A DNA stretch of 64,000 nucleotides from Isurus oxyrinchus (taxonomy: Eukaryota). A model generated the notes under the pieces. It did no database searches, had not been told where the DNA came from, and worked only from the letters and a program-made list of their open reading frames with translations. The DNA lies in the NCBI GenBank assembly GCA_026770705.1, contig JANJGN010000546.1:62001-126000 (forward strand), read 5' to 3'. The number at the start of each line of letters is the position of its first letter. Within the stretch, counting starts at the first letter, position 1. The position numbers and the translations under genes are program-made. Below, piece after piece: positions 2,103 to 37,175 of this stretch.

Positions 2103-2480
2103 CAGAAACCTGAAGCTGGGTTACAGGGTAATAGTTATGGCTCGGACGATTGCCAAATTTTATCGTGAAAAAATAAGGTCCTGCATCTTCCCGTCTGATG
2201 TTGTTTATAATCAGGGAACAGTCGCCATCTTTCAGGTCTCCAGACAGCCGGGTCCGATGGCGGAACCGTGGTAACTCGTGACTGTGACCCTTGGAGTGAA
2301 AGGCTGTAGACCATTTAGACCATTTGTTCCGTATGTAGCTTCTCATTTTCCAGATTCCGACATGTGGTTTCTTTACCAAATCTGATGGATAACTGTAATG
2401 ACATGGAATCTGTACACACGAACCTTCCTGCGCTGTCACCTCTCGTGGAGTGTCACCTTTCCACTCTTGTGACAATCCAA
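2103..2480 (-). CDS. Siglec-like gene A, V-set Ig exon (phase 1-1, 378 nt)
   Basis: ccccAG acceptor and G|GTAAGT donor. Siglec Cys pattern GSCVQIPC...DCSL with no F-strand Cys. F strand reads GPYFFTIK (Thr at the essential Arg position). Confidence 0.9.
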
Positions 2481-6724: not shown

Positions 6725-6764
6725 CTTGGAGAAGTGACATGAGGAAGTAGGATTTCCCGATCAT
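6725..6764 (-). CDS. Gene A signal-peptide exon, coding part MIGKSYFLMSLLQ (whole exon 6725-6806)
   Basis: ATG at 6764 and CAAG|GTAAT phase-1 donor that joins the V exon in frame (LLQ-VGLSQEW). Confidence 0.85.
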
Positions 6765-7213
6765 TGTCCACTCCCAGATATTTCATAAGCTTCTGACTCT
6801 CAAACTCTGAAAGAGAAAGGAGTTAATGAGACCTCACCTCTTGTCCGACAGCTCTCAAGAGATCAGAACTGTTTTTGGACAATGTCTTTACAGAGTAATT
6901 TGATTCTCTGTGGGATGATAGGTGCTCTGCAGAGAGTTACAAGGCTTTAAGAAAGAAAAACATTGAAGGATTTGCATTTCTATAGCACCTTTCACCACCT
7001 CAAGACGTCCCAAAGCTCATGTCTCTGCACTTCCCTCATCCCTTGAGCTAGAAAGATGTTCTGTACAACAGACTTGAGTCTCACACCCAGATCTCAATAA
7101 CCAGTAGAAATCTTTCAAATGCATCAATCATTGGATCTGTCTTTATAAAGTCACAACATCAACAAAGGACGGTGTTGGTGGTGGAAGTGAATTCTAATCG
7201 TTCCGTTACTTAC

Positions 7214-7559: not shown

Positions 7560-10320
7560 AACGATCCCTGTTATCATTACGGAGGGAGTGCTGCACTGTC
7601 AGCGGGAGTTTACTGTGGGAGTGCTGCACTATCAGAGGGTCAGTAATGTGGGAGGGCTGCACTGTCAGAGAGTCAGTAATGTGGGAGGGCTGCACTGTCA
7701 GAGAGTCAGTAATGTGGGAGTGCTGCAACATCAGAGCGTCAGTAATGAGGGAGTGCTGCACTATCAGAGGGTAAGTAATAAGGGAGTGCTGAACTGTCGG
7801 TGGGTCTGAACTGAGTGAGTTCCGCACAGTTGGAGGGTCAGTATTGAGGGGGTGCCGGACTGTGGGAGGGTTAGTACTGAGGTAGAGTGGAGTGTGAGGA
7901 GATATCCTTTCATGGCAAAGTTTAACTGGAATTTATTTAAACACAATTCTTGTACTGTGTGTTATTGCAAAAGAAAGGATTTGAGGAACTAAGTCTTGTT
8001 CCCGTAAGCCTAAAAATAATTTTCACGGATTTCAATGATTTAGCAATGAAACCTCCCTCTTTGTGCACCAGTCTTGATTGAAACAACTCGCTCAGCACAG
8101 TGGGAGGGTGAGTACTGAGGGAGTGCTGCACTGTGGGAGGGTGAGTACTGAGGGAGTGCTGCACTGTGGGAGTATGAGTACTGAGGGAGTGCTGCACTGT
8201 GGGAGAGTGAGTACTGAGGGAGTGCTGCACTGTCAGAGGTTCAGTAATGAGGGAGTGCTGCACTGTCAGAGGGTCAGTAATGTGGGAGGGCTGCACTGTC
8301 AGAGGGTCAGTAATGTGGGAGGGCTGCACTGTCAGAGGGTCAGTAATGTGGGAGGTCTGCACTGTCAGATGGTCAGTAATGAGGGAGTGCTGCACTGTCA
8401 GAGGGTCAGTAATGTGGGAAGGCTGCACTGTCAGAGGGTCAGTAATGTGGGAGTGTTGCACTGTCGGAGGGTCAGTACTGAGTGAGTTCCGCACAGTTGG
8501 AGGGTCAGTATTGAGGGGGTGCCGGACTGTGGGAGGGTTAGTACTGAGGTAGAGCGGAGCGTGAGGAGATATCCTTTCATGGCAAAGTTTAACTGGAATT
8601 TATTTAAACAGAATTCTTGTACTGTGTGTTATTGCAAAAGAAAGGATTTGAGGAACTAAGTCTTGTTCCCGTAAGCCTAAAAATAATTTTCACGGATTTC
8701 AATGATTTAGCAATGAAACCTCCCTCTTTGTGCACCAGTCTTGATTGAAACAACTCACACAGCACTGTGGGAGGGTGAGTACTGAGGGAGGGCTGCACTT
8801 CGGGAGAGTGAGTACTGAGGGAGGGCTGCACTGTGGGAGGGTGAGTACTGAGGGAGGGCTGCACTGTGGTTTGTGAGTACTGAGGGAGTGCTGCACTGTG
8901 GGAGAGTGAGTACTGAGGGAGTGCTGCACTGTCAGAGGATCAGTAATGAGGGAGTGCTGCACTGTCAGAGGGTCAGTAATGTGGGAGGGCTGCACTGTCA
9001 GAGGGTCAGTAATGTGGGAGGTCTGCACTGTCACGTGGTCAGTAATGAGGGAGTGCTGCACTATCAGAGGGTCAGTAATGTGGGAGGGCTGCACTGTCAG
9101 AGGGTCAGTAATGTGGGAGGGCTGCACTGTCAGAGGGTCAGTAATGTGGGAGGTCTGCACTGTCAGTTGGTCAGTAATGAGGGAGTGCTGCACTATCAGA
9201 GGGTCAGTAATGTGGGAGGGCTGCACTGTCAGATGGTCAGTAATGAGGGATTGCTGCACTGTCAGAGGGTCAGTAATGTGGGAGGGCTGCACTGTCAGAG
9301 GGTCAGTAATGTGGGAGTGCTGCACTGTCGGAGGGTCTGTACTGAGTGAGTTCCGCACAGTTGGAGGGTCAGTATTGAGGGGGTGCCGGACTGTGGGAGG
9401 GTTAGTACTGAGGTAGAGCGGAGAGATATCCTTTCATGGCAAAGTTTAACTGGAATTTATTTAAACACAATTCTTGTACTGTGTGTTATTGCAAAAGAAA
9501 GGATTTGAGGAACTAAGTTTTGTTCCCGTAAGCCTAAAAATAATTTTCACGATTTCAATGATTTAGCAATGAAACCTCCCTCTTTGGGCATCAGTCTTGA
9601 TTGAAACAACTCGCACAGCACAGTGGGAGGGTGAGTACTGAGGGAGGGCTGAACTGTGGGAGGGTGAGTACTGAGGGAGGGCTGCACTGTGGTTTGTGAG
9701 TACTGAGGGAGTGCTGCACTGTGGGAGAGTGAGTACTGAGGGAGTACTGCACTGTGGGAGGGTGAGTACTGAGGGAGGGCTGCACTTCGGGAGAGTGAGT
9801 ACTGAGGGAGGGCTGCACTGTGGGAGGGTGAGTCCTGAGGGAGTGCTGCACTGTGGGAGGGTGAGAATTGAGGGAGTACTGCACTGTGGGAGTGTCAGTA
9901 CTGAGGGAGTGCTGAACTGTCGGAAGGTCAGTAGTGAGGGAGGGATACAGTGTCAGAGGGTCAGTACTGAGGGAATGCTGCACTGTCAGTTTGTCAGCAC
10001 TGTGGGAGTGCTGCACAGTCAGAAGGTGTGTACCGAGGGAGTGCCGAACTGTCGGAAGGTCAGTAGTGAGGGAGGGATACAGTATCAGAGGATCAGTACT
10101 GAGGTAATGCTGCACTGTGGGTGAGTGAGTACTGAGGGAGTGCTGCACTGTCAGATTGTCATCCATGAGGGAGTGCTGCACTGTCAGAAGGTCAGTGCTG
10201 ACGGGGTGCTGCACTTGAAAAGGGTCAATAATGAGGTAGTGCAGCACTGTCAGAGGGACAGTAATGAGGGAGCGCTGCACTGACGGAGGGTCAGCACTGA
10301 GGAAACGCTGCACTGTCAGT
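7560..10320. repeat. 33-bp satellite arrays interleaved with three copies of a ~190-bp AT-rich block
   Basis: GAGATATCCTTTCATGGCAAAG...GAAACAACTC recurs at about 7900, 8567 and 9425. Confidence 0.9.
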
Positions 10321-11049
10321 TCTGAGCGTGGTCTGCACTGTTCTAAGTGCATTCTAGGCACTGCCCAAGGTTCCGCCTGATGTCCGTGTAACAACAACAT
10401 CATGTACACGTCGAGAATATTTCCCACTGTTCGGTGCAGCAAGACAGCTTTGGAATGGCACCACCACTGGCAGGAGTGTGAAACTACAATGTGACATGTT
10501 TACATGGGAAATTTCTATTATAAAGCTGGGCACAGGAATTCGTATGATAGAACAAATGTGACAACATGAAGTAATGTCTTTGAGCCAAAAATTTGGCTTC
10601 AAAATAAGAATTTTAATCTATAAATATCTACAGAACAGGCTGAGCATTTTAATCACTTGTGTTAATCAATGTAATTTTATTCATAACCCAAATGCTTCTT
10701 ACAATCTATCGCAGCATGAAAAAGGTGCAGCATTCAGAAAGCACATTCCAATCAGAGAACAGAGTTTAGCAACGTCACATTTCCGTTCATTCCTATTCGA
10801 CCATGTTGGCTGCACACAGCCAGATAATGCCGTGGTTATGATGTGTCCACACAGCAGGACTGGGGAGCACCAGGTATAAGGAAAAGTTTCAGCTTGCTGA
10901 GGAGAAGAAGGAGAATCTCTCGTTGCAGGTTTCTCTCCGTACATTAAGAAGCAGGCATGCCGATGTTTCATTGCACTCTGTCTGCTGATGGGAGTCCGCT
11001 TGGAAATTGCTGTTTGTGCTGATGGAAAGAATAAGCTTTTCATAAATCG

Positions 11050-11640
11050 AGGGATTGAGTAAAAACACAGGGAGGTTATGCTGAACATTTATAAAGCTCT
11101 GGTTAGGTCACAACTAGAGTATTGTGTCCAGTTCTGGTCTCCTCACTTTGGGAAGGAAGTGAGGGTCCTTGAGAGGGTGGGGAGGAGATTGAGCAGAATG
11201 GGTCCAGGGATGAGGGATTTTAGCTACAAGGTTGGGTTGGAGAAGCTGGGGTTGTTCTCCTTGGAGCAAAGGAGATTGAGGGGGGATCTGATCGAGGTGT
11301 ACAAGATGATGATGGGTTTAGATAAGGCAGACAAAGAGATGCTGTTGCCATTAGCTGATGGTACAAGGACTGGGGGACACAGATTGAAGGATTTGGACAG
11401 GGGGTGATGTGAGAAGGAACTTTTTTACACAGCGAGTGGTAATGAGCTGGAACTCGCTGCCTACGAGGATGGTGGAAGTGGAGACGATGAACGATTTCAA
11501 AAGGAAATTGGATGGACACATGAGGGGAAATAAACTCACAGGGATACGGGGATAGAGCGGGGGAAATGGGACTGAGTGGATTGCTCTACAGAGAGGCAGC
11601 ATGGACTCAATGGGCTGAATGGGCTCCTACTGTGCTGGAA
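11050..11640 (+). mobile_element. CR1 LINE 3' fragment in the gene B 3' region
   Basis: YKALVRSQLEYCVQFWSPH, LEQRRLRGDLIEVYK and CR1 tail GGGCTGAATGG. Inverted twin at about 45750-46360. Confidence 0.9.
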
Positions 11641-11758
11641 TACCTCTCTGATACGAAGGTGATTCTAACCAGGACACTGACCAGTTTCATTACAACTTAA
11701 CCCAACATCACACGTTATTTGTCCGCACTGACTGACCAGATTGTTGCTGTACAAAGCT

Positions 11759-11898
11759 TCAAACAGTCTGTCGACTTCCTTTCACTGTTTGTCTCTCCCA
11801 GACACAGACTCCAGTGATAGTGATAACCACAGCCACAAGGAATATCACAGCTCGTATTCCCAGGATCAGGATCACGTGCAGAATCTCTCCTCCACTGT
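11759..11898 (-). CDS. Gene B transmembrane/terminal exon: (D)SGGEILHVILILGIRAVIFLVAVVITITGVCVWERQTVKGSRQTV*
   Basis: Pyrimidine tract plus TCTAG acceptor, phase 1. Hydrophobic helix with internal Arg. TGA at 11759-11761. Confidence 0.85.
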
Positions 11899-13018
11899 CT
11901 AGAGAACACACAGAAAGAAATCATCACTGACTCTCCGCTTTCAATCTCTCACTCTGGCTGAACAATCAAGCTTCATATCACTGCAACATTTGCTGTAATA
12001 TTGACTCATCCACTGGGATTCAATGTGGAATGAATGTTTTCATTGTAAACACTCGAAGAGTGGACAATCGGAACTTTCCCGTTAGCGTGGAACATTGGTG
12101 AGAATGGATCATTGTGCTGTTGGACTCCCTGTCCAATGTTTCTCTCCATCACTGTGTACAGGATTGTGCTGTAGAAAATTCTGGAAACGTTTAGTGCAGG
12201 GTGGAAATCCATCTCGGACGCGTGTGTGATTCGGGCAGGATCGAGATGGACTCCCCCACGGACTTACACCCCCCGCTTAATAAACAGTTCCAATCTTTAC
12301 CCAGAGAGAGGGGAGAATGTGGAACTCGCTCCCACTGGGAGTGGTTGAGGTGAGTAGTAGCGAATTAGGAAGTGAAATTGCTTGAAAAGCTGGGAGATGC
12401 AAGGGTTAAGTGCAACCGTGCCACCACTGGTGGGAGAGTGTAACTACAGCATAACGTTTACATAGGCAATCCCCATTATGAACATGGACATTGGACATCA
12501 TGTGAAATATGTGCACTGGAAAGCTGAGAACTTGATGTAAGCTTTTCACCAACAGGAATTCCCTTCCTAAACCTCTCCACCTCTCACTTACTCTCAGATA
12601 CTCAAACAAAATTTCACACAAAATCACGTAAGGACGAGTTGGGACAGGTGACTGGTCAAAGGGTTAGGTTTCAGGAAGCTTCTTAAAGGAGGATAGAGAG
12701 TTGGAGAGGCAGAGAGTATCTGTGAGTATCTCTGTGCATCTGAGTGTCTGTAGTAGACTTTGAAATTTCCATATTCTTCCATTAATATGAAAGGGAACAC
12801 AAATCCCAGAATCCAGGTCAACTCTCCGGTGCAACACTGAAGGAGGTCAGGAAACCCACAGGGCAGTATGTGATAGTGTATTTGTTTGTGAGTGTGTCTT
12901 TGTGTGTGCTCATAGATGTGGGATTGTGTGTCTGCAGCTGTCTATTTAGGTCTGTATATTTATGTGTGTTTGTGTAGTGTTTGAATCTAAGAGAGATGTT
13001 GAAGTCTGTGTAACTCAC

Positions 13019-13171
13019 GTTCCACAGTGATGGTTATGAACCCCTCCACTGCTCCATGTTCATTCTCTGCCACACACTGATAGTCTCCAGTGTCCATGGA
13101 TGTAACATGAGGAATCACCAACCACAGCTCATTGTTGGAACTTGTTCTGTTCATTGGGACATTGAGATGTC
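13019..13171 (-). pseudogene. 3' half remnant of the third Ig exon of gene B (acceptor and 5' half replaced)
   Basis: Encodes HLNVPMNRTSSNNELWLVIPHVTSMDTGDYQCVAENEHGAVEGFITITVE with a GTGAGT donor. Homology to exon 43506-43787 stops at about 13171. Confidence 0.85.
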
Positions 13172-13492
13172 AGCGCAGGACTCAACAAGACAGATCGCAG
13201 GTTTACCACAGAAAATGAACAACAATTTATATTTAAAGGGAAGAGAGTGCTGATTGGGTGGCAAGTGATCTCTGATTGGAGGAGAGTTGCCATGGAAAAT
13301 AATGTGTGCGAGCTGTAAAGTTTAGACAGCTTGTCTCTTCATTCAGCAATAATCAATTAAAGATCAATTAACTTCTATCGACTGTGAAGCACTTTGAGAG
13401 GCATGAGAATGTGGACACTGAGAACGGGCTGCACTGTCAGAGGGTCAGCGCTGAGGGAGTGCTGATGTGGAATGAAAGGTGTATGTACTTAC

Positions 13493-13789
13493 CTTGCACA
13501 GTTAGTACGAGGGTCCGCTCCGATGAAACAGATGGATATCTCACTCTGCAGCTGAGAGTGTGTCCGTGGTGTTTGAGTGATGGGATCAGGGTCAGAACAG
13601 AAGTATAGGTCAGAGTGACACCATGCTGAGTTACAGTGTTTGAGACTGATCCAGGTACGTCAGTGGGAGTGTCCCAGGTTAAGACAGGTGCTGCTGTTCC
13701 ATTGCACGTTGTGTTGAAGGTGCAGCTTACATCCACACGCTTTCCTGCAATAATTTCAGCAGGGAATATCGTGGGTTTATCAGTGAAAT
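13493..13789 (-). CDS. Gene B second C2-set Ig exon (297 nt, phase 1-1)
   Basis: FTDKPTIFPAEIIAGKRVDVSCTFNTTCNG...LSCRVRYP...LTVQ with TTAG acceptor and GTAAGT donor. Confidence 0.9.
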
Positions 13790-15104
13790 CTAACAGACAG
13801 AGAATGGATCCTTTTAGAGAAATATAACGTGAAGCATCAGTTCAAATAGAAACCACAGTCCCACAAGAGAAAGCACTTTTACAAGGATGATATCAGAACT
13901 GAGAGGTTACAACGATCATTTTAGAATTGTCTATTTTTACACTTGTTGAATCTCTGTCACTCAGATTAATACACTCTCACTCAGTGACCCTTGATTTGAC
14001 CAGACTGGGTGAGGGTGGAGGAACAGCTCACAGCTCGGGGAGAACAGACTCAGCATTTGGAAAAGGATATAGAGACACTGGAGAGGGTGGTAAAAAGCTT
14101 CACAAGGATGATCTCCGCAATGTGAGGCTTTACCTATCAGGAGAGGATGTACAGGCTGGGTCTCTGTTCTCTTGAACAGAGAAGGTTGAAGGGTGACCTC
14201 ATTTGACCTTTGAAGTAGTGAAAGGTTTTGATCGAGTAGACATGGAGAGAGTGTTTCCACTCATCACAATGAACAAAACCAGAGGCTGACAGTATAACAT
14301 CCTCACTAATAAATCCAATGGGGAATTCAGGAGAAACTTCTTTACCCAGAGAGTGGGGAGAATGTGTACTTCAAGAATCACTTCATTGGCTGTGAATCGA
14401 TTTAGGATCGTCCTGAGGTGGTGAAAGGCGCTATAGAAATGTGAGACTTGCTTTTGTATTTTGAAAGCAGGTTTCCAAGGATGAGATGGGAACTGAGAGG
14501 TCACAACAATCAGCAGCAACTTTCCTATTTTCAAACTTGGTGGGGAATGTGTCACTGAGCTGAATACACTTTCACTCCCAGACCCTTGAATTGCCAACAC
14601 TGGGGTGTGGGTGATGGAGCAGCCCACAGCTCATGGAACCCTGGCTCATCATTCTCTCAGAGATCTGGGTCACTGATCCCATTGCTCTCTGTGGGAGCTT
14701 CCTGTGTACAAACTCACTGCCACGTTAGACAGTGGCTATACTTCAAGAATTTCTTCATTGTCTGTGAAGTGATTTGAAGTTTGTTGAGGTGGTGAAAGGT
14801 GCTATAGGAATGCACGTCCTTCTTTTGTCAAATTGTTAGACTTTTAAACAGGATTAGAGAGACTGATGGGAGTGGATAGCCTGATAGCATTGATGGACAC
14901 AGTCAATACATTTAATCATTGACATTAAAGTGATTATTAGAGGTTGCTTTAAGACTGAACTGGAAGCAATCACCAGGTTATTGAGAATCAGACAGTGTGT
15001 AAAAATAAACTGTGTTTTGTGTTAATATGTAAACGTCACAGTTTGTGTTATTTCCCATTGAGTGTTGAATGTGAATTGTTGAGTAATTATAACACAGCAC
15101 TTAC

Positions 15105-15469
15105 CAGAAACATGAAGCTGGGTTACAGGATAGTAGTTGTATCTTTTCCTGCCGTCAAATTCTATCCTGAAAAAATAAGGTCCTGCATCTTCCCGTCTGA
15201 TGTTGTTTATAATCAGGGAACAGTCGCCATCTTTCAGGTCTCCAGACAGCCGGGTCCGATGGTGGAACCGTGGTAACTCGTGACTGTGATCCTTGGAGTG
15301 AAAGGCAATGGGAGAACCCAATTTGTGTGTTTCTTTATTACACCAGATTCCATCTCGTGGTTTGTTTTCCAACTCTACTGGATAACTGTAACGAAATGGA
15401 ATCTGTACACAGATTCCTGCGCTGTCACCTCTCGTGGAGTGTCACCTTTCCACTCTTGTGACAGTCCAG
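15105..15469 (-). pseudogene. Frameshifted V-set exon (B2) inside gene B
   Basis: 365 nt against 369 nt in paralogs: 4-nt deletion near 15410, TAG at 15375-15377, B-strand Cys changed to Phe. Splice sites intact. Confidence 0.88.
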
Positions 15470-15648
15470 CTGGGGAGAGAAATCTCAATATTTATCCCTG
15501 GATCCTCATTGTTTAATGAATCTCTTTGGATCTTCTTTGTCTAAGGAATCTTTTTGGATCCTCATTGTCTAAGGGATTATTTCTGATCCAAACCCCATAT
15601 TGTTGTATTGTTGATTCCGATGCAGCATTGTAGACTGACTTGTCCCCC

Positions 15649-18400
15649 AAAAAACTGTGTATCTCAGCCTTGAATATAATTAATGACCCAGCCTCTGCAG
15701 CTCTCTGCGGTATAGAATTCCACACATTCACTACCCTCTGAGAGAAGAAACTCCTCATCTCTGTCTTAAATGGGTGACCCCTTACTCTGAGATTATGCCC
15801 TCTGGTCCTAGACTCTCCCACAAGGGGAAACAACCTCTCAGCATCTACCCTGTCAAGCACCCTAAGAATCTTATATGTTTCAATAAGGTCAGCTCTCATT
15901 CTCCTAAACTCCAATGAGTACAGGCCCATCCTACTCAACCTCTCCTCATATGAAAATCCCTCCATTACTGGGATCAACCTAGTGAACCTTCTCTGGACTG
16001 CCTCCAATGCCAGTACATCTTTCCTTAGATAAGGGAACCAAAACTGCTCACAGTATTCTAGGTGTGGTCTAACGAGTGCCTTGTAAAGTTTTAGCAAGTC
16101 TTCCCTATTTTTATACTCCATTCCCTTTGAAATAAAGGCCAACATTCCACCTGCCTTCCCTATTAACTGCTGAACTTGTATGTTATCTTTCTGATGACCC
16201 CCAAATTCCTCTATGCTTCAGCTTTCTAATGTCTTTCTCCATTGAAATAATATTCAGCTCCTCTATACATCCTGCCACAGTGCAGCAGCTCACATTTTCC
16301 CACATTATATTCCATCTGCCAAGTTGATGCCCACTCACTGAACCTGTCTATGTCTCTCTGTAACTCTTCGTGTCACCCTCACCGCTTGCCTTCCCATCTA
16401 TTTTTGTGTCATCCGCAAACTTGGCGATAGTACATTAATTTCCCTCATCCAAGTCATTAATTATATATTGTAAATAATTGTGGCCCCAGCACTGATCCGT
16501 GTGGCAATCCACAGGTTGTCATCCTGAAAATGCCCCCCTTATCCCAACTCTCTGACTTCTATTAGTTAGCCGATCCTCTATCCATGCTAATATACTGCCC
16601 CCAACACCATGGGCTCTTATCTTATTAAGTAGCCTTATATGTGGTACTTTACTGAATGCCTTTTGGAAATCCAAATATATTACATCTACTGGTTCCCCTT
16701 TATCTATCCTGTTTGTTACCTCCTCAAAGAATTCTAATAAATTTGTCATGCATGATTTCCCCTTCATGAAGCCTGTGTTTGTTTAAATTATGCATTTCTA
16801 AATAGTCTGCTATTACATCCTTTATAATGGACTCTAACATGTTCCCAATGACAGATGTTAAGCTAACTGGCCTATAGTTACCTGTTTGTTGTCTCCCTCC
16901 CTTTTTGAATATGGGTGTTACTTTGGCAGATTTCCAATCCTCTGGGAGTTTCCCAGAATCTAAGGATTCTTGGAAGATTAAAACCAGTACATCCACTATC
17001 TCTGCATCTACTTCCTTTAATATCCTAAGATGCAACCTATCAGGTCCAGGAGACCTATCAGACTTGAGACCCATTAGTTTCGCTAGCGTTATTCTCTAGT
17101 GATAGTTATTGTATTTATTTCCTCTCCCCACCCCCCTTTTGCCCCTTGATTATTTAGTATTTTTGGAATGATATTAGTGTGTTCTACTGTGAAGACTGAT
17201 GCAAAGTATTTATTCAACTCCTCTGTCATTTTCTGGTTCCCCATTATTATTTCCCCAGCCTAGTTCTCTAAGGGGCCCATGTTCACTTTGGTCTCTCTCT
17301 CCCTTTTTATATATTTAAAGAAGCTTTTACTGTCCTTTTTTATATCAATTACTAGTTTACCTAGTTTTCTCCCTCTTTATTTATTTTTTGGTCATCTTCT
17401 GTTGGTTTTTAAAACTCTCTCAATCCTCTGGCTTACCACTAATCTTTGTCGTGCTGCATGTTTTTTCTTTCAATTTGACACACACCTTAACTTCTTTGGG
17501 TAACCCAGGTTGGTTTATTCTCTTCCTACAATCCTTCTTCCTCACTGGGATATATCTTTGTTGTGAGTCATGAGCTATTTTGTTAAAGATCTGCCATTGT
17601 TCATCCAGCATCTTTTCTGCTAAACCCCTTTCCCAGTCCACTCCAGACAACCCTGTCCTTATTCCTTTGTCATTACACTTATTTAAGTCCAGCACAGTTG
17701 TTTCCGACCCACGTTTCTCAGTCTCAAACGGAATGCTAAATTCTACCATGTTATGGTCACTGTTTTCCAGGGGATCATTTATTCTGAGATCATGTATGAA
17801 ACCTGCCTCATTACACATTACCAGATCCAAAATAGCCTGATCACTGGTTAGATCCACGACATATTATTCCAGGAAACTGTCTTGAATACACTCTATGAAT
17901 TCTTGCTCATGGCTACCTCTGCCAATTGGGTTTTCCCAATCTACATGAAGATTAATGTACTGCCTTTTTTACATGCCCTCATTATCTCATGATTTATTCT
18001 CTGTCCTATAGCCGAGCTACAGTCATGGGGTTGATAGACCACTCCCACCAGTTCCTTCCTCCACTTGTTATTCATTACCTCGAGCCATATGGATTCTATA
18101 CCCTCCGATCCAAGATCATTTCTTGCTTTCGTACTTATTCCATCTCCTATTAACAAAGCTACCCCACCACCTTTCCTTCCTGCCTGTCTTTTTGAAAAGT
18201 CACATACCCCTGAATATTTATTTCAAAGCTTTGATCTCCTTGTAACCATGTCTCCATAATGGCTATAAGATCAAACCCATTAACCTCTATTTGTGCCTTT
18301 AATTCATTTATGTTGTTCCAAATACTATGTGCATTTAAGTCAAGAGCCATTAATTTTGTCTTTTTATCATTTTCCTCCCTCTGACACTATTTGCTGATGT
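15649..18400 (-). mobile_element. CR1 LINE, long degenerate ORF2 (endonuclease to RT to C-terminus)
   Basis: LIAIMETWL, NYRPVSLTSVIG, GKSCMTNLLEFFEEVT, YLDFQKAF, LVRPHLEYC. Confidence 0.92.
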
Positions 18401-18549
18401 ATTTTAATGTTTGGACACTGTGTACCCACCTGTCACACACTGGGTATCATCACCAAAACAGCTATCCTGCAATGCTGACAAATCCTTTTGCTTTGTAAGC
18501 CTACATATACCCTCTCCAGAACACTCTCCCCATCTATTTAGTTTAAAGG

Positions 18550-20370
18550 CAATACTGAGGGAGAGCAGCACTGTCAAAGGGTCATTACTGAGGGAGTGTT
18601 GCACAGTTGGAAGCTCTGGAACAAGGGACTGCAGCATTATCTGAGGGTCAGTCGGGAGGGAGGTATTCAATGTTGGATTGTAAGATCTGAGGGAGCGCTG
18701 CAGAGTTGGAGCTTCAGTAGTGAAGGAGTGCTGCACTGTCAGAGGGTCAGTACTGAGGGAGTGCTGCACTGTCAGAGGGTCAGTACTGAGGGAGTGCTGC
18801 ACTGTTGGAGGGTCCGTACTGTGGGAGTGCTGCACGGATGGAGGATCAGTACAGAGAGATTTCTAAACTGTTGGAGGATCAGTACTGAGAGAGTGCTGCA
18901 CTGTCAGAGGGTCAGTACTGAGGGAGTGCTGCACTGTCAGAGGGTCAGTACTGAGGGAGTGCTGCACTGTCAGCGGGTCAGTTCTGAGAGAGTGTTGCAC
19001 TATCAGAGGGACAGGACTGAGGGAGTGCTGCACTGTCAGAGGGTCAGTACTGAAGGAGTGCTGCACTGTCGGAGGGTCAGTACTGAGGGAGTGCTGCACT
19101 GTTGGAGGGACATTATTGAGGGAGTGCTGCGATGTCGGAGGATCAGTACTGAGGGAGTGCTGCACGATCAGGGGGTCAGTACTGAGGGATTGCAACACTG
19201 TTGCAGGGTCTGTACTGATTGAGTGCTGCACTGTTGGAGGGTCAGTACTAAGGGAGTGCTGCACTGTCAGAGGGTCAGTACTGAAGGAGTGCTGCACTGT
19301 CGGAGAGTCAGTACTGAGGAGGTGCTGCACTGTCGGAGGATCAGAACTGAGGGGGTGCTGCACTGTCAGAGGGTCAGTACTGAGGGAGTGCTGCACTGTC
19401 AAAGGGTCAGTACTGAGGGAGTGCTGCCCTGTCAGAGGGTCAGTATTGAGGGAGTGCTGCACAGTCAGAGGGCCAGTACTGAGGGAGAGCTGCACTGTCG
19501 GAGGGTCAGTACTAAGGGAATGCTGTACAGTCAGAGGGTCAGTACTGAGGGAATGCTGTACAGTCAGAAGGTCAGTACTGAGTGAGTGCTGCACGGTCAG
19601 GGGGTCAGTACTGAGGGAGTGCTGCACTGTCAGAGGGTCAGTACTGAGGGAGTGCTGCACTGTCAGAGGGTCAGTACTGAGGGAGTGCTGCACTGTCAGG
19701 GGGTCAGTACTGAGGGAGTGCTGCACTGTCAGAGGGTCAGTACTGAGGGAGTGCTGCACTGTCAGAGGGTCAGTACTGAGGGAGTGCTGCACTGTCAGGG
19801 GGTGAGTACTGAGGGAGTGCTGCACTGTCAGAGGTTCAGTATTGAGTGAGTACTGCACTGTCAGAGGGTCAGTACTGAGGGAGTGCTGCACTGTCAGGGG
19901 GTCAGTACTGAGGGAGTGCTGTACTGTCAGAGGTTCAGTTTTGAGTGAGTGCTGCACTGTCAGAGGGTCAGTACTGAGGGAGTGCTGCACTGTCAGGGGG
20001 TCAGTACTGAGGGAGTGCTGCACTGTCAGAGGGTCAGTACTGAGGGAGTGCTGCACTGTCAGAGGGTCAGTACTGAGGGAGTGCTGCACTGTCGGAGGGT
20101 CAGTACTGAGGGAGTGCTGCACTGTCAGGGGGTGAGTACTGAGGGAGTGCTGCACTGTCAGAGGGTCAGTACTGAGGGTGTACTGCACTGTCAGAGGGTC
20201 AGTACTGAGGGAGTGCTGCACTGTCAGGGGGTCAGTACTGAGTGAGTGCTGCACTGTCAGAGGTTCAGTACTGAGGGAGTGCTGCACTGTCAGAGGGTCA
20301 GTACTGAGGGAGTGCTGCACTGTCAGAGGGTCAGTACTGAGGGAGTGCTGCACTGTCAGGGGGTGAGTAC
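18550..20370. repeat. 33-bp satellite array (ACTGAGGGAGTGCTGCACTGTCAGAGGGTCAGT)
   Basis: About 55 tandem units. Confidence 0.95.
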
Positions 20371-20581
20371 ATTGCGATTCCTGCTCTGCTCTATCGGTCT
20401 CTTGGCTGGAAATAAAAGCCGCTGTGTTACTGTTCAGAAACTGTTATTAATTGTGTTCCGGTCACAATTTTCCCTAAAAAACAGATTCTCTGATTCTCAT
20501 CAGAATACCTTTCTATGGGATCCTGCTGTGCATTATCTACACTGTTCTAGCTAATGTAGAATAAAAGGTGTCCGTACTTAC

Positions 20582-20878
20582 ATTGCACAGTTAGTACGAG
20601 GGTCCGCTCTGATGAAACAGATGGATATCTCACTCTGCAGCTGAGTGTGTGTCCGTGGTGTTTGAGTGATGGGATCAGGGTCAGAACAGAAGTATAGGTC
20701 AGAGTGACACCATGCTGAGTTACAGTGTTTGAGACTGATCCAGGTACGTCAGTGGGAGTGTCCCAGGTTAAGACAGGTGCTGCTGTTCCATTGCACGTTG
20801 TGTTGAAGGTGCAGCTTACATCCACACGCTTTCCTGCAATAATTTCCGCAGGGAATATTGTGGGTTTATCTGTGAAAT
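20582..20878 (-). CDS. Gene B first C2-set Ig exon (297 nt, phase 1-1)
   Basis: Same peptide as 13493-13789. Extra Cys (CTFNTTC) typical of the Siglec inter-domain disulfide. T|GTAAGT donor. Confidence 0.9.
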
Positions 20879-21737
20879 CTAACAGACAGAGAATGGATCC
20901 TTTTAGAGAAATATAACGTGAAGCATCAGTTCAAATAGAAATCACAGTCCCACAAGAGAAAGCACTTTTACAAGGATGATATCAGAACTGAGAGGTTACA
21001 ATGATCAGGAGAGATTTTCTTGCTCTTTGGCAGTAGTGTTTCTGTCTCTCAGCTTAATACACGTTCACTCCGAGACAGGTGAATTGAGAACACTGGATGA
21101 GAGAAGAGGCTCAGACCAGAGATTGGAGTTAAAAGCAGAATACTGTGGATGCTGGAAATCTGAAACCAAAACAAAAATTGCTGGAAAGACTCAGCAGGTC
21201 TGACAGTATCAGTGGAGAGGAAGACAGGGTTAACGTTTCGAGTCCGTATGACTCTTCATCAGACCAGAGGTTTGAGTTCACTGGCTTCTCATTTCCTCAG
21301 CGATCTGGGTGATTTATTACATTGTGGTTTGCTGGATCTTGCTGTGCACAAACTGCCAGCTGTGTTTAACATCTGTGACCACAATTCAGGAATAATTTCA
21401 TTGGCTGTGAAGGGATTTGGATCCTCCTGAGGTGGTAAATTGCGCTGCAGAAATGCACATCTTTCTTTTATCGATAAGTCAGACTTTTAAACAGGACAGG
21501 AGAGATTGATGGGAGTGGATAACCTGATAATACAGTTAATGCTTTTCATCATTGATATTAAAGTGAGTATTAGAGGTTGCTTTAGGACTCAACTGGAAGC
21601 TATCACCAGGTTATTGAGAATCAGACAGTGTGTTATAATAAGCTGTGTTTTGTGTTAATACGTAAACGTCACAGTTTGTGTTATTTCCCATTGAGTGTTG
21701 AATGTGAATTGTTGAGTAATTATAACACAGCACTTAC

Positions 21738-22106
21738 CAGAAACGTGAAGCTGGGTTACAGGGTAATAGTTATGGCTCGGACCATTGTCAAATTCTATTC
21801 TGAAATAATAAGTTCCTGCATCTTCCCGTCTGATGTTGTTTATAATCAGGGAACAGTCGCCATCTTTCAGGTCTCCAGACAGCCGGGTCCGATGGCGGAA
21901 CCGTGGTAACTCGTGACTGTGATCCTTGGAGTGAAAGGCAATGGGAGCCCAGGGAATCTGTTCCTCATTATTAAACCAGAGTCCACCTCGCGGTTGGCTT
22001 TCCAAATGTGATGGGTAACTGTAATGACATGGAATCTGTACACACGAACCTTCCTGCGCTGTCACCTCTCGGGGACTGTCACCTTTCCACTCTTGTGACA
22101 GTCCAA
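21738..22106 (-). CDS. Gene B V-set Ig exon with the essential Arg intact (GTYYFRIE)
   Basis: 369-nt open exon, canonical splice sites, Siglec Cys pattern. Confidence 0.92.
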
Positions 22107-23642: not shown

Positions 23643-23682
23643 CTTGGAGAAGTGACAGGAGGAAGTAAGATTTCCCGATCAT
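23643..23682 (-). CDS. Gene B signal-peptide exon, coding part MIGKSYFLLSLLQ (whole exon 23643-23724)
   Basis: ATG at 23682 and phase-1 GTAAT donor. Confidence 0.88.
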
Positions 23683-24133
23683 TGTCCACTCCCAGATAAT
23701 TCCTCAGCTTCTAACTCTGATTTTCTGAAAGAGAAAGGAGTTAATGAGACCTCACCTCTTGTCCGACAGCTCTCGAGAGATTAGAACTGCTTTTAGACAA
23801 TGTCTTCACGGATCTAATTTGATTCTCTGTGGGATGATAGGTGCTCTGCAGAGAGTTACAAGGCTTTAAGAAAGGAAAACATTGAAGGACTTGCATTTCT
23901 ATAGCACCTTTCAACACCTCAGGATATCCCAAAGCTCATGTCCCTGCTCTTCCCTCATCCCTTGAGCTAGAAAGATGTTCTGTACAACAGACTTGAGCCT
24001 CACACCCAGATCTCAATAATCAGTAGAAATCTTTCAAAGGCATCAATCATTGGAATCTATCTTTATAAAGTCACAACATCAACAAAGGACGGTGTTGGTG
24101 GTGGAAGTGAATTCCAATCGTTCCGTTACTTAC

Positions 24134-24274
24134 CCAGGACCTGTCCGACTGCTCGCCTGGGGAAGAACTGCCCACACGCTCTGCTTGGGCTGAATGACCT
24201 CTTTCTGTGCTGCTCCCTCTGTGTGTTTAATTAGAAAGGGTTGATGTGTCACTGTGAGTCAAAATGTGGAAGTG
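24134..24274 (-). promoter_or_regulatory. Gene B putative exon 1 and promoter
   Basis: Paralog of 7214-7354 with GTAAGT donor and AAAATGTGGAAGTG ETS-type motif. Confidence 0.6.
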
Positions 24275-24504
24275 GTCACTTTATGAGAATGCAACTGATG
24301 TTTAGAGTTTTTTGAAGCTGTTAACCCTTTGCATTCTGGACTTGTGATGATATTTCTGCTCAAAAGTGGAAAGTCATTGACCAGGAATTCTCCTGTGGGT
24401 CATTGGGATTCAAACCCTCTCTCGCTGTCTGAGTGAGAAGGTCGTCTGTTCGAGATTCATTTGGCAAAATTCAGACTGACAAACCAGACCGGCAATCGGT
24501 GTCA

Positions 24505-24897
24505 GGACTGAGAGTCCTGCACTGTCAGAGGGTCATTCCTGAGGGCATGCTGCACTGTTGGAGGGTCAGTACTGAAGCAGTGCTGCACTGTCAGAGGCTC
24601 AGTATTGTGGTAGTGCTGCACTGCCAGAGGGTCAGTACTGAGGGAATGCTGCACTGTCAGAGGCTCAGTATTGTGGGAGTGCTGCACTGCCAGAGGGTCA
24701 GTACTGAGGGAGTGCTGCACTGTCAGAGAGTCATTCCTGAGGGCGTGCTGCACTGTTGAAGGGTCAGTATTGTGGGAGTGTTGCACTGCCAGAGGGTCAG
24801 TACTGAGGGAGTGCTGCACTGTCAGAGGGTCAGTACTGAGGGAGTGCTGCACTGTTGGAGAATCAGTACTGAGGGAGTGCTGCACTGTCAGAGGATC
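24505..24897. repeat. 33-bp satellite array
   Basis: Tandem units. Confidence 0.9.
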
Positions 24898-24899
24898 AA

Positions 24900-25050
24900 A
24901 TTATTTCTGATCCAAACCCCATATTGTTGTATTGTTGATTCCGATGCAGCATTGTAGACTGACTTGTCCCCAAGCTCAGCACTGACCCTACTCCAGCAGA
25001 GACTGTGAAACACACTAACACAGTGCCTCTAGCCTGAGCTCTGCATGTGT
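24900..25050 (-). other. Orphan fragment of Siglec-gene intron 2
   Basis: TTATTTCTGATCCAAACCCCATATTG... matches about 22848-22995, 15578-15648 and (inverted) 38335-38480. Confidence 0.8.
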
Positions 25051-25899
25051 CGGAGGTGCCGCTGTGGTGGGTTCATGACCTTCACCATCCGCTTCACTGA
25101 GTTTCGGTTAAAACTGAACTGGAACACACACTAAACACTGATGGAAACCATCACTTCCTCTTCTCCAACATGAAGAGTTTCAGCAGAAGAAGTAAACTGT
25201 TGCTGAAAAGGAACTTTCTTCATCATATCACAGAATCACACAGAATAGCAGGAGGCCATTCATGCCATTTTGGCTGTGCTAGCTCTTTAAAAGAAGCACA
25301 CAATTGGTTTCAATCCACCTCTCTTCCCCCATCGTCCTTCAAATTCTTCCTGTCTCAGATTGAATCCAAATTCATGAATATAAATCCCCTCAGATGGGAG
25401 TAACCATCACTGAGCAGGCAGGTTAGGTTTTATTGTGCACAGCGAGTTGCTGTGATCTGGAAGGTGCTGCCTGAAAGGGCGGTGGAAGCAGATTCAATAG
25501 GATCTTTCAAAATACTTGCAGAGTGTGAGAGAATGGGAGATTGGGACCAATTGGATATCTGTCCCAGGAGACCAGGACAGGGACAATGGGCTGAGTGGCC
25601 TCTTTCTGTGCTGTTTGATTCTGTGGTTTTCTAATATTTATCTGCGCTGCAGATCAGAGACAAACAGGAAACAATAAACTTCTGATCTTTCCACACAGGC
25701 TGAATTGTCATCTCTTTATTTTCAGCCAGTTTGCTTAATTCTTGTGGTTTGGTGGTGAAACTGTGCAGCAAGTGTGAGTGTTGGGTTGTAGATCTGTCTA
25801 TTCTGACTGCTGCTGTGCTCATGGTGACTTCTCAATTACATGAGAGTCTCTGAGATCCTCCACACCCAAGGATTAAGGAGAGACTTCCAAAGATTCAGG

Positions 25900-28800
25900 A
25901 CGCAGTACTGAAGAGGTGCTGCACTGTCAGAGGGTCAGTACTGAGGGAGTGCTGCACTGTCAGAGGGTCAGTACTGAGGGAGTGCTGCACTGTCAGAGGG
26001 TCATTACTGAGGGAGTGCTGCACTGTCAGAGGGTCAGTACTGAGGGAGTGCTGCACTGTCAGAGGGTCAGTACTGAGGGAGTGCTGCACTGTCAGAGGGT
26101 CAGTACTGAGGGAGTGCTGCACTGTCAGAGGGTCAGTACTGAGGGAGTGCTGCACTGTCAGAGGGTCAGTACTGAGGGAGTGCTGCACTGTCAGAGGGTC
26201 AGTACTGAGGCAATGCTGCACTGTCAGAGGGTCAGTACTGAGGGAGTGCTGCACTGTCAGAGGGTCAGTACTGAGGGAGTGCTGCACTGTCGGAGGGTCA
26301 GTACTGAGGGAGTGCTGCACTGTCGGAGGGTCAGTACTGAGGGAGTGCTGCACTGTCAGAGGGTCAGTACTGAGGGAGTGCTGCACTGTCAGAGGGTCAG
26401 TACTGAGGGAGTGCTGCACTGTCAGAGGGTCAGTACTGAGGGAGTGCTGCACTGTCAGAGGGTCAGTACTGAGGGAGTGCTGCACTGTCAGAGGGTCAGT
26501 ACTGAGGGAGTGCTGCACTGTCAGAGGGTCAATACTGAGGGAGTGCTGCACTGTCAGAGGGTCAGTACTGAGGGAGTGCTGCACTGTCAGAGGGTCATTA
26601 CTGAGGGAGTGCTGCGCTGTCAGAGGGTCAGTACTGAGGGAGTGCTGCACTGTCAGAGGGTCAGTACTGAGGGAGTGCTGCACTGTCAGAGGGTCAGTAC
26701 TGAGGGAGTGCTGCACTGTCAGAGGGTCAGTACTGAGGGAGTGCTGCACTGTCAGAGGGTCAGTACTGAAGCAATGCTGCACTGTCAGAGGGTCAGTACT
26801 GAGGGAGTGCTGCACTGTCAGAGGGTCAGTACTGAGGGAGTGCTGTACTATCGGTGGGTCAGTACTGAGGGAGTGCTGCACTGCCAGAAGTTCAGTACTG
26901 AGGGAGTGTTGCACTATCGGTGGGTCAGTACTGAGGGAGTGCTGCACTGTCAGAGGGTCAGTACTGAGGGAGTGCTGCACTGTCAGAGGGTCAGTACTGA
27001 GGGAGTGCTGCACTGTCAGAGGGTCATTACAGAGGGAGTGCTGCACTGTCAGAGGGTCAGTACTGAGGGAGTGCTGCACTGTCAGAGGGTCAGTACTGAG
27101 GGAGTGCTGCACTGTCAGAGGGTCAGTACTGAGGGAGTGCTGCACTGTCAGAGGGTCAGTACTGAGGGAGTGCTGCACTGTCAGAGGGTCAGTACTGAAG
27201 CAATGCTGCACTGTCAGAGGGTCAGTACTGAGGGAGTGCTGCACTGTCAGAGGGTCAGTACTGAGGGAGTGCTGTACTATCGGTGGGTCAGTACTGAGGG
27301 AGTGCTGCACTGCCAGAAGTTCAGTAGTGAGGGAGTGTTGCACTATCGGTGGGTCAGTACTGAGGGAGTGCTGCACTGTCAGAGGGTCAGTACTGAGGGA
27401 GTGCTGCACTGTCAGAGGGTCAGTACTGAGGGAGTGCTGCACTGTCAGAGGGTCATTACTGAGGGAGTGCTGCACTGTCAGAGGGTCAGTACTGAGGGAG
27501 TGATGCACTGTCAGAGGGTCAGTACTGAGGGAGTGCTGCACTGTCAGAGGGTCAGTACTGAGGGAGTGCTGCACTGTCAGAGGGTCATTACTGAGGGAGT
27601 GCTGCACTGTCAGAGGGTCAGTACTGAGGGAGTGATGCACTGTCAGAGGGTCAGTACTGAGGGAGTGCTGCACTGTCAGAGGGTCAGTATTGAGGGAGTG
27701 CTGCACTGTCAGAGGGTCAGTATTGAGGGAGTGCTGCACTGTCAGAGGGTCAGTACTGAGGGAGTGCTGCACTGTCAGAGGGTCATTACTGAGGGAGTGC
27801 TGCACTGTCAGAGGGTCAGTACTGAGGGAGTGCTGCACTGTCAGAGGGTCAGTACTGAGGGAGTGTTGCACTGTCAGAGGGTCAGTACTGAGGGAGTGCT
27901 GCACTGTCAGAGGGTCAGTATTGAGGGAGTGCTGCACTGTCAGAGGGTCAGTACTGAAGCAATGCTGCACTGTCAGAGGGTCAGTACTGAGGGAGTGCTG
28001 CACTGTCAGAGGGTCAGTACTGAGGGAGTGCTGTACTATCGGTGGGTCAGTACTGAGGGAGTGCTGCACTGCCAGAAGTTCAGTACTGAGGGAGTGCTGC
28101 ACTGTCAGAGGGTCAGTACTGAGGGAGTGCTGCGAAGTCAGAGGGTCAGTACTGAAGCAATGCTGCACTGTCAAAGGGTCAATATTGAGGGAGTGCTGCA
28201 CTGTAAGAGGGTCAGTACTGAGGGAGTGCTGCACAGTAAGAGGGTCAGAATTGAGGGAGTGCTGCACTGTCAGAGGGTCAGAAGTGAGGGAGTGCTGCAC
28301 TGTCATAGGGTCAGTACTGAGTGAGTGCTGCACTGTCAGAGGGTCAGTACTGAGGGAGTGCTGCACTGTCAGTGAGTCAGTATTGAGGGAGTGCTGCACT
28401 GTCAGAGGGTCAGTATTGAGGGAGTGCTGCACTGCCAGAAGTTCAGTACTGAGGGAGTGCTGCACTGTCAGTGAGTCAGTATTGAGGCAGTGCTGCACTG
28501 TCAGAGGGTCAGTACTGAGGGATTGCTTCACTATCGGTGGGTCAGAACTGAAGGAGTGCTGCACTGTCAGTGAGTCAGTATTGAGGGAGTGCTGCACTGT
28601 CAGTGAGTCAGTATTGAGGGAGTGCTGCACTATCGGTGGGTCAGTACTGAGGGAGTGCTGCACTGTCAGAGGGTCAGTACTGAGGGAGTGCTGCACTGTC
28701 AGAGGGTCAGTACTGAAGCAATGCTGCACTGTCAGAGGGTCAGTACTGAGGGAGTGCTGCACTGCCAGAAGTTCAGTACTGAGGGAGTGTTGCACTATCG

Positions 28801-30712
28801 GTGGGTCAGTACTGAGGGAGTGCTGCACTGTCAGAGGGTCAGTACTGAGGGAGTGCTGCACTGTCAGAGGGTCAGTACTGATGGAGTGCTGCACTGTCAG
28901 AGGGTCATTACTGAGGGAGTGCTGCACTGTCAGAGGGTCAGTACTGAGGGAGTGCTGCACTGTCAGAGGGTCAGTACTGAGGGAGTGCTGCACTGTCAGA
29001 GGGTCAGTACTGAGGGAGTGCTGCACTGTCAGAGGGTCAGTACTGAGGGAGTGCTGCACTGTCAGAGGGTCAGTACTGAAGCAATGCTGCACTGTCAGAG
29101 GGTCAGTACTGAGGGAGTGCTGTACTATCGGTGGGTCAGTACTGAGGGAGTGCTGCACTGTCAGTGAGTCAGTATTGAGGGAGTGCTGCACTGTCAGAGG
29201 GTCAGTATTGAGGGAGTGCTGCACTGCCAGAAGTTCAGTACTGAGGGAGTGCTGCACTGTCAGTGAGTCAGTATTGAGGCAGTGCTGCACTGTCAGAGTG
29301 TCAGTACTGAGGGATTGCTTCACTATCGGTGGGTCAGAACTGAAGGAGTGCTGCACTGTCAGTGAGTCAGTATTGAGGGAGTGCTGCACTGTCAGAGGGT
29401 CAGTACTGAGGGAGTGCTGTACTGCCAGAAGTTCAGTACTGAGGGAGTGCTGCACTGTCAGAGAGTCAGTATTGATGGAGTGCTGCACTGTCAGAGGATC
29501 AGTACTGAAGCAATGCTGCACTGTCAGAGGGTCAGTTTTGAGGGAGTGCTGCACTGTCAGAGGGTCAGTACTGAGGGAGTGCTGCACTGTCAGAGGGTCA
29601 TTACTGAGGGAGTGCTGCACTGTCAGAGGGTCAGTACTGAGGGAGTGCTGCACTGTCAGAGGGTCAGTACTGAGGGAGTGCTGCACTGTCAGAGGGTCAG
29701 TACTGAGGGAGTGCTGCACTGTCAGAGGGTCAGTACTGAGGGAGTGCTGCACTGTCAGAGGGTCAGTACTGAAGCAATGCTGCACTGTCAGAGGGTCAGT
29801 ACTGAGGGAGTGCTGCACTGTCAGAGGGTCAGTACTGAGGGAGTGCTGTACTATCGGTGGGTCAGTACTGAGGGAGTGCTGCACTGCCAGAAGTTCAGTA
29901 CTGAGGGAGTGCTGCACTGTCAGAGGGTCAGTACTGAGGGAGTGCTGCACAGTAAGAGGGTCAGTACTGAAGAGGTGCTGCACTGTCAGAGGGTCAGTAC
30001 TGAAGCAATGCTGCACTGTCAGAGGGTCAGTATTGAGGGAGTGCTGCACTGTCAGAGGGTCAGTACTGAAGCAATGCTGCACTGTCAGAGGGTCAGTACT
30101 GAGGGAGTGCTGCATTGTCAGAGGGTCAGTACTGAGGGAGTGCTGCACTATCAGAGGGTCAGTACTGAGGGAGTGCTGCACTGTCAGAGGGTCAGTACTG
30201 AGGCAATGCTGCACTGTCAGTGGGTCAGTATTGAGGGAGTGATGCACTGTCATAGGGTCAGTACTGAGGGAGTGCTGAACTGTCATAGGTTCAGTACTGA
30301 GTGAGTGCTGCACTGTCAGAGGGTCAGTACTGAGAGGGTGCTGCACTGTCAGAGGGTCAATGCTGAGGGAGTGCTGCACTGTGGGAGAGACAGTACTGAG
30401 GGAGTGCTGCACTGTCGGAGGGTCAGTACTGAGGCAGAGCTGCACTGTCAGAGGGTCAGTACTGAGGGAGTGCTGTACTAATGGTGGGTCAGTACTGAGG
30501 GAGTGCTGCACTGCCAGAAGTTCAGTACTGAGCGAATGCTGCATTATCGGTGGGTCAGTACTGAGGGAGTGCTGCACTGTCAGAGGGTCAGTACTGAGGA
30601 AGTGTTGCACTGTCAGAGGGTCAGTACTGAGGGAGTGCTAAACTGTCAGAGGGTCAGTACTGAGGGAGTGCTGAACTGTCAGAGGGTCAGTACTGAGGGA
30701 GTGCTGGACTGT
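25900..30712. repeat. 4.8-kb 33-bp satellite array with higher-order periodicity
   Basis: About 145 units; variant monomers recur at 429-bp and 792-bp spacings. Confidence 0.97.
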
Positions 30713-30719
30713 GAATTAT

Positions 30720-30950
30720 TGGAATCTGTCTTTATAAAGTCACAACATCAACAAAGGACGGTGTTGGTGGTGGAAGTGAATTCCAATCGTTCCGTTACTT
30801 ACCCAGGACCTGTCCGACTGCTCGCCTGGGGAGGAACTGCCCACACGCTCTGCTTGGGCTGAATGACCTCTTCCTGTGCCGCTCCCTCTGTGTATTTAAT
30901 GAGAAAGGATGGATGTGTCACTTTGAGACAAAGTGGGAGGTGTTTGCTGT
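30720..30950 (-). promoter_or_regulatory. Orphan exon 1/promoter copy with no downstream leader exon
   Basis: Near-identical to about 24052-24260 and 37050-37258; donor at 30803/30802; runs into satellite. Confidence 0.7.
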
Positions 30951-37035: not shown

Positions 37036-37175
37036 ACTTCCTCATTTTGTCTCACAGTGACACATCAACCCTTTCTCATTAAATACACAGAGGGAGCAGC
37101 ACAGGAAGAGGTCATTCAGCCCAAGCAGAGCGTGTGGGCAGTTCCTCCCCAGGCGAGCAGTCGGACAGGTCCTGG
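37036..37175 (+). promoter_or_regulatory. Gene C putative promoter and exon 1
   Basis: ACTTCCTCATTTT PU.1-type motif 37036-37048, TTAAATA 37079-37085, CCTGG|GTAAGT donor. Confidence 0.6.

Follow-up and report, generated by a model that had tools for sequence, protein, structure and literature searches.

The minus strand of positions 11759-11898 holds a real membrane exon, with an arginine buried in its hydrophobic span and a short, tyrosine-free tail behind it. We read it as the exon that supplies the membrane anchor, and ends the coding sequence, of an activating-type receptor in a Siglec-like (CD33-like) family of elasmobranchs, at a probability of roughly 0.65, and the sequence gives good support to a putative activating-type partner of an inhibitory Siglec-like family. 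A buried arginine followed by a 12-residue tail is the usual build of an activating receptor. By the window we mean the whole stretch of 64,000 nucleotides that was analysed; within it, B denotes the copy that carries this exon, C the upstream gene on the minus strand, D the inverted paralog (called gene C in the first-pass annotation) and A the gene with the V exon at 2103-2480. The 3' part of copy B consists of these features:

11759-11898, minus strand: coding part of the membrane exon, with the stalk DSGGE, a 29-residue hydrophobic span containing the Arg, a 12-residue tail and the stop TGA (11761-11759)
11852-11854, minus strand: the Arg codon CGA, inside the membrane span and its invariant motif ILGIRA; Arg stands here in 10/10 public shark proteins with this cassette
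11737-11898, minus strand: full extent of the exon in RNA (162 nt), with the donor CTG/GTCAGT after 11737, 22 nt beyond the stop
10660-11018, minus strand: last exon, 3' UTR in the membrane-exon frame, with the acceptor ...ccatcag/CAC and AATAAA at 10681-10676; its 3' end is approximate
13493-13789, minus strand: C2-set Ig exon of 297 nt and phase 1-1 (Pfam C2-set_2, 5e-9), with the membrane exon as its direct splice partner

The membrane exon opens in phase 1 at 11898, directly behind an acceptor AG at 11900-11899 that follows a pyrimidine tract; a phase 1 opening is usual for exons of the Ig superfamily. Its frame within 11759-11898 reads SGGEILHVILILGIRAVIFLVAVVITITGVCVWERQTVKGSRQTV and then TGA, the longer open frame (11759-11911, minus strand) ends in ...DSGGEILHVILILGIRAVIFLVAVVITITGVCVWERQTVKGSRQTV at the same TGA, and the peptide is [D]SGGEILHVILILGIRAVIFLVAVVITITGVCVW-ERQTVKGSRQTV-stop. 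The arginine is residue 11 of the 29 in the hydrophobic span, whose best 21-residue window has a Kyte-Doolittle mean of 2.9 with the arginine included, which bears out the earlier placement of an arginine within the membrane (CGA, 11854-11852). After ...VCVW the tail, ERQTVKGSRQTV, has neither tyrosine nor ITIM. Its length is 12 residues, so that the 11-residue tyrosine-free tail of the first-pass annotation was right in composition and wrong in length. The stop is retained in RNA contigs and in the great white and catshark models.

Expression was assessed with the contigs of four public runs, compared with the window over 11400-15520; the status of these runs as RNA rests on their spliced joints, the library type being a guess. 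A GT..AG joint on the minus strand, 13493 to 11898, skips 1594 bases and is present in X1, X5 and X6, three runs from three studies. It joins the C2-set Ig exon about 1.6 kb upstream to the membrane exon, so that in RNA the exon is spliced to an Ig exon. A further joint, 15105 to 13789, occurs in two runs (X1 and X6), and the two joints together match the donor and acceptor sites by which a V-set exon, the C2-set exon and the membrane exon are linked. At the joint between C2 and membrane exons two letters fit either side, and the junction requires a C2 exon that ends in G. The C2 exon at 13493 does so, forming the codon GAC (Asp) across the joint, while the other two C2 copies of the window end in T; the joint in X1, X5 and X6 has this B-type last base.

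The main contig of X1 is identical to the window copy across the membrane exon. X5 and X6 differ from it by 11868 L>Q, 11815 T>A and 11794 R>G, exactly the residues of the great white shark, and these variants leave frame, arginine and stop intact; two versions are therefore expressed, both with frame, Arg and stop. At 15112 the X1 contig over the joint between V and C2 exons is of C/D type and not of B type. One contig that retains the intron mixes B-type and D-type bases with others and matches neither copy, so further copies exist. Pinning the RNA contigs on one copy was ruled out, since each side of a joint covers only 23-28 nt and near-identical paralogs elsewhere are possible. Among the contigs over 11400-15520, none connects the membrane exon of copy B with an intact leader and V exon.

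Downstream, X1 has a loose end at 11737, below which depth drops, and the loose letters match 10989-11018 exactly, directly after the acceptor of the last exon. Because the stop lies 22 nt before this last exon joint, the downstream exon is 3' UTR in the membrane-exon frame. A splice inside the tail, at a donor ACA/GTGAAAG, was considered and discarded: no RNA joint uses it and the exon continues to 11737. The last exon also contains, at 10702-11016 (minus strand), 105 open codons in the frame that continues the membrane exon beyond TGA, ending just before the poly(A) signal. The TGA as a recent nonsense mutation truncating a long tail was rejected, given that the great white and catshark models share the position of the stop, that the 105-codon frame matched no Pfam family, and that copy D has a 2-bp gap in its counterpart.

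The ectodomain exons of the cluster, searched one by one and not as a joined spliced model, belong to a Siglec-type family. The intact V exons of genes C, D and A match V-set and PF24518 Ig_CD22 at 35.9-39.4 bits (cut-off 27; E-values 1e-8 to 9e-10), and the frameshifted V exon of copy B scores 26.1, just under the cut-off; the exon after V matches Pfam C2-set_2. In a PDB sequence search with an intact V exon the top 18 matches were all Siglecs, led by Siglec-5 (1e-15) and followed in order by Siglec-8, Siglec-7, MAG, CD33, Siglec-10, sialoadhesin and Siglec-15, with MAG (5e-14) nearly as good a match as Siglec-5, -8 and -7. Siglecs are marked by a cysteine pattern, C-x4-C in strand B plus a cysteine in strand E, and by an essential arginine of strand F (YFFR-x-E) that contacts the carboxylate of sialic acid. 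Alignment of the V exon with Siglec-5 sets SCVQIPC/GDCSLII/GPYFFRIE on LCVLVPC/KNCSLSI/GSYFFRVE. The cysteine pattern is present in C, D and A, and the second cysteine is Phe in the V exon of copy B. The codon of the predicted sialic-acid-binding arginine is kept in B, C and D and encodes Thr in A. The V domains of the cluster may bind sialic acid.

Several observations concern the V exons themselves. Gene A (2103-2480, minus strand) reads YFFTIKF, with Thr for the sialic-acid-binding arginine, and its C-C' region is longer, basic and rich in Trp; outside that region it is about 90% identical to the others. Across the four exons at 15105-15469, 21738-22106 and 2103-2480 (minus strand) and 38531-38899 (plus strand), the 3' halves are near-identical and the 5' halves (strands B-C') strongly divergent, a pattern that would fit gene conversion together with diversification of the binding face. 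The right edge of the window holds a further, divergent V-set exon at 63117-63524 (minus strand; V-set, 4e-5), about 30% identical to the others.

A profile-free search of 1.84 billion representatives returned 285 proteins below 1e-10. The first ten named, mostly among the best of the 285, are elasmobranch RefSeq models called CD33-like or Siglec-8 to Siglec-15; a second set also included models labelled MAG-like or hemicentin-like and others without a name. In most relatives the membrane span is uncharged and 70-120 tail residues follow it, with an ITIM (LLYASI, LLYINV) and a distal TEYAQIRF or TEYASIRF (TEYxxI). Such ITIM-tailed relatives are common in other sharks, and the window has only remnants of inhibitory-type cytoplasmic exons, which match the great white CD33-like model P0015:

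7214-7306, minus strand: inhibitory-type cytoplasmic exon remnant
24134-24214, minus strand: inhibitory-type cytoplasmic exon remnant
30803-30895, minus strand: inhibitory-type cytoplasmic exon remnant
32890-33003, minus strand: inhibitory-type cytoplasmic exon remnant
37083-37175, plus strand: inhibitory-type cytoplasmic exon remnant

They align with residues 264-294 and 295-332 of P0015, the part ending in DPVYVNV, and three of the five sit just upstream of a leader exon. The best PDB matches (Siglec-5, -8 and -7) and the relatives with ITIM and membrane-distal TEYxxI hint, and only hint, at a CD33-related affinity of the shark family. Since relatives with ITIM tails exist, the earlier description of this type of exon, as one of an activating-type Siglec-like receptor of a cartilaginous fish, is fair: a spliced C2 Ig exon, a conserved arginine, a tyrosine-free tail, Siglec-type V domains and ITIM relatives all speak for it. 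The description does not extend to an intact receptor from copy B, whose V exon is frameshifted and has no leader.

The Arg cassette is present in 10 RefSeq models from five sharks of three orders (lamniform, carcharhiniform and orectolobiform), named CD33-like or Siglec-12, -13 or -14; word-indexed searches with the cassette only gave few proteins, and a full-length query was needed. The models compare with the window exon as follows:

Carcharodon carcharias: P0164 (43/46 identical), P0165 (43/46) and P0166 (41/46)
Scyliorhinus torazame: P0079 (38/46), P0006 (35/46) and P0154 (27/38)
Scyliorhinus canicula: P0152 (31/39) and P0153 (30/39)
Chiloscyllium punctatum: P0021 (33/42)
Chiloscyllium plagiosum: P0231 (identity uncounted; the model continues past the cassette)

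Identity thus ranges from 27 to 43 residues over the 38-46 covered per model. ILGIR(A/G) with its arginine is found in all ten while other positions of the span vary, and half of them share the tail E(R/G)(Q/R)(T/R)VKGSRQTV and the same stop (with three more tail differences in P0166), the remainder stopping 4-8 residues into the tail. The models are 219 to 987 residues long, and the cassette forms the C-terminus in nine; in P0231 further Ig sequence comes after it. In the stingray model P0227 the span with an arginine is a different one, LAVRGVLF, and the tail has 11 residues; that this span is related to the shark cassette would be only a guess.

The closest known counterparts are the great white CD33-like P0166 (270 aa) and Siglec-12 P0164/P0165 (346-348 aa), which have the same order of V, C2, DSGGE, ILGIRA span and 12-residue tail, and the same stop. 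The window V and C2 exons are 88-97% identical to these three models, which are automatic annotation of another assembly and differ from the window at the residues L/Q, T/A and R/G; a search for an experimental study of P0164, P0165 or P0166 found none. The build is accordingly not new, RefSeq models of the great white shark, catsharks and bamboo sharks already having it. What is added here is the damage in copy B and in its mirror copy D, the broken V exon being a feature of the window copy that sets it apart from the great white models.

The locus is degenerate and rearranged. An inverted duplication within the window aligns 10415-12363 with 46978-45028 at 96% and 13461-15516 with 40543-38484 at 95%, and both of its arms are damaged. 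The locus has these further features:

15105-15469, minus strand: V-set exon of copy B, disabled by a 4-bp deletion between 15414 and 15413 and a premature stop at 15377-15375
13020-13169, minus strand: 3' half only of an I-set Ig exon of copy B (tblastn, 82-86% to P0006; I-set, 1.7e-6)
20582-22106, minus strand: upstream gene C, with an intact V exon (21738-22106) and a C2 exon (20582-20878), without a membrane exon of its own
23645-23698, minus strand: leader exon of gene C, the nearest leader upstream of the membrane exon (tblastn, 100% over 18 residues to great white P0013, q3-20)
45493-45655, plus strand: membrane exon of copy D, the inverted paralog, with the same Arg and a 1-bp insertion within 45570-45585 that shifts the frame of the tail
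38531-43786, plus strand: Ig exons of copy D, namely V (38531-38899), C2 (40215-40511) and I-set (43506-43786, with an in-frame TAG at 43604-43606)

The V exon of copy B has also exchanged the second Siglec cysteine for Phe, in the stretch CCATTTCGT at 15391-15399. Copy D can be aligned only as far as 15516, 47 bp upstream of this exon, and a LINE fragment and a 33-bp satellite take up the space from there to gene C. By tblastn no leader exon was found between 15469 and 20550; leaders occur in the window only at 6727-6786, 23645-23698 and 37607-37663. The half I-set exon has lost its 5' half and its acceptor, homology to copy D ending at 13171, and is skipped by the joint between C2 and membrane exons. 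The same region (12918-13193, minus strand) shows very high contig depth in X1, and X1 loose ends at 13017/13018 continue as a membrane exon of the inhibitory type (translation ...RDSSKWTVG); the contigs therefore derive from ITIM paralogs elsewhere. The C2 and membrane exons of copy B, for their part, are intact and have consensus splice sites.

In copy D the V and C2 exons are intact. The earlier statement that a second gene has the same membrane arginine was borne out for this copy (45493-45655, plus strand), where the insertion lies 3' of the arginine and turns the tail into ...ITIFWSLCLGETNSERK.... This tail frame was rejected as the ancestral one, the 1-bp insertion being in no RNA contig and all orthologs following the frame of B. 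Large arrays of the 33-bp satellite, with several of their frames open, lie between the receptor genes at 7560-10500, 18400-20450, 24430-24900, 25850-30860, 42960-43430, 47010-47445 and 53770-54115, and other satellites lie at 1-1000, 56400-57880 and 60540-61190.

As the V exon of copy B is frameshifted and has no leader, a protein from the membrane exon requires 5' exons taken from the neighbouring gene; failing that, the copy is a transcribed pseudogene. This second outcome, which we place somewhat below even odds, would make copy B a partial tandem duplicate (V, C2, half I-set and membrane exons) that lost its leader and gained a frameshift, with no receptor made from the locus and functional activating genes elsewhere. 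The 4-bp deletion, premature stop and Cys-to-Phe exchange of its V exon argue for this, as do the truncated I-set exon, the end of homology to copy D at 15516 followed by LINE fragment and satellite, and the C/D-type base at 15112 in the X1 contig that joins V to C2. It is countered by the intact C2 and membrane exons with their consensus splice sites, by the B-type donor base of the C2-to-membrane joint and the agreement of the main X1 contig with copy B over the exon, and by the intact leader, V and C2 upstream on the same strand, which could feed the exon. Gene C is a possible candidate supplier of such 5' exons. A composite gene would take its leader and V exon, with or without its C2 exon (20.5-23.7 kb), skip the broken V exon, and continue with the C2 exon at 13789 and the membrane exon, to give V-C2-(C2)-TM(Arg). 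The exons are on the same strand, in order and all of phase 1-1, gene C lacks its own membrane exon, its C2 donor is still GT (T/GTAAGT), and X1 contains both a C/D-type V joined to C2 and a B-type C2 joined to the membrane exon. We nevertheless consider this arrangement less likely than not: its intron would span 6.8 kb, packed with LINE and satellite sequence, a V exon with a good acceptor would have to be skipped, paralogs elsewhere are equally able to give both joints, and no contig linking the two halves was seen in the comparison of 11400-15520, which stops short of 20.5 kb.

A different objection accepts the short-tailed Arg form and questions its function: it could be a non-signalling decoy, be retained in the ER until assembly with an unrelated partner, or tune clustering. 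An arginine 8-11 residues into the span points clearly to no one adaptor class by comparison with mammalian receptors, and the adaptor repertoire of sharks is poorly documented in the literature searched. That depth is, weakly, nearer to DAP12-type than to FcR-gamma-type receptors. Against a non-activating role, which we find improbable, stand the invariance of the arginine and of ILGIRA across three shark orders while other span positions vary, and the adaptor coupling that goes with the same build in all well-studied paired receptor families (PMC13358205).

Under the preferred reading of an activating-type receptor, the membrane arginine would pair with a membrane aspartate of an ITAM or YxxM adaptor dimer of the FcR-gamma, DAP12 or DAP10 type, and ligand binding by the Siglec-type V domain would trigger activation, as opposed to the ITIM-mediated inhibition by the long-tailed relatives. 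The exon of copy B itself would be translated only by way of a leader and a V exon from the neighbouring gene, 6-12 kb upstream, and would otherwise be a transcribed remnant. Binding of DAP12, FcR-gamma or DAP10 by the Arg span is what we infer by analogy: as a general rule a short tail with a basic membrane residue means adaptor coupling, the pairs Siglec-5/14 and Siglec-11/16 being examples (PMC13358205). A 2014 survey did not find FcR-gamma in sharks (PMC4016189), which counts against the preferred reading. Our literature searches on shark Siglecs and shark adaptors found nothing specific.

Human Siglec-14 and Siglec-16, the activating partners of Siglec-5 and Siglec-11, likewise combine a Siglec-type V-set domain, a basic membrane residue and a short tail without ITIM, and have long-tailed ITIM relatives with near-identical ectodomains (PMC13358205); ITIM relatives also exist in the shark family. 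The likeness is one of build; the shark family was expanded independently, and in the searches made its membrane cassette had no detectable similarity to mammalian cassettes. Siglec-15, conserved from fish to mammals, uses a membrane Lys with DAP12/DAP10; it is an activating-type Siglec that occurs in fishes (PMC7226832). The shark V exon matches it at 2e-8, far more weakly than Siglec-5, -7, -8, CD33 or MAG (1e-15 to 1e-13), the cassette has Arg in place of Lys, and the domain build also differs. The same logic of membrane Arg or Lys, short tail and inhibitory twins is found in other paired Ig receptors, such as LILRA, KIR-S, PILR-beta and the teleost LITR/NITR. Their ectodomains belong to different Ig families and are no sialic-acid lectins, and PILR-beta matches the shark V exon at only 1e-3; what they have in common with the shark receptor is the logic.

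Beyond this locus we would propose, tentatively and with less than even confidence, that the Arg span and 12-residue tail form an old exon cassette of lamniform, carcharhiniform and orectolobiform sharks, with a possibly related Arg span in a stingray model, and that duplication and unequal crossing-over grafted the cassette onto Siglec-like ectodomains with anything from two to more than six Ig domains, to give paired activating and inhibitory sialic-acid receptors in cartilaginous fishes, the window being a case of such grafting in progress. If that is true, the broken duplicate B would donate its C2 and membrane exons to the upstream gene, and the family would conflict with the published statement, from teleost work, that fish genomes lack CD33-related Siglecs (PMC7226832). 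In the literature searched, no paper on shark Siglecs or on the Arg-membrane build was found. This one exon is of limited value, since the same build is already annotated in other sharks and the copy is partly decayed. A large shark cluster with both ITIM-tailed and Arg-membrane Siglec-like forms would push the design of paired sialic-acid receptors back to the cartilaginous fishes, or mean that it had two origins, and would offer a concrete receptor for asking which ITAM adaptor sharks use.
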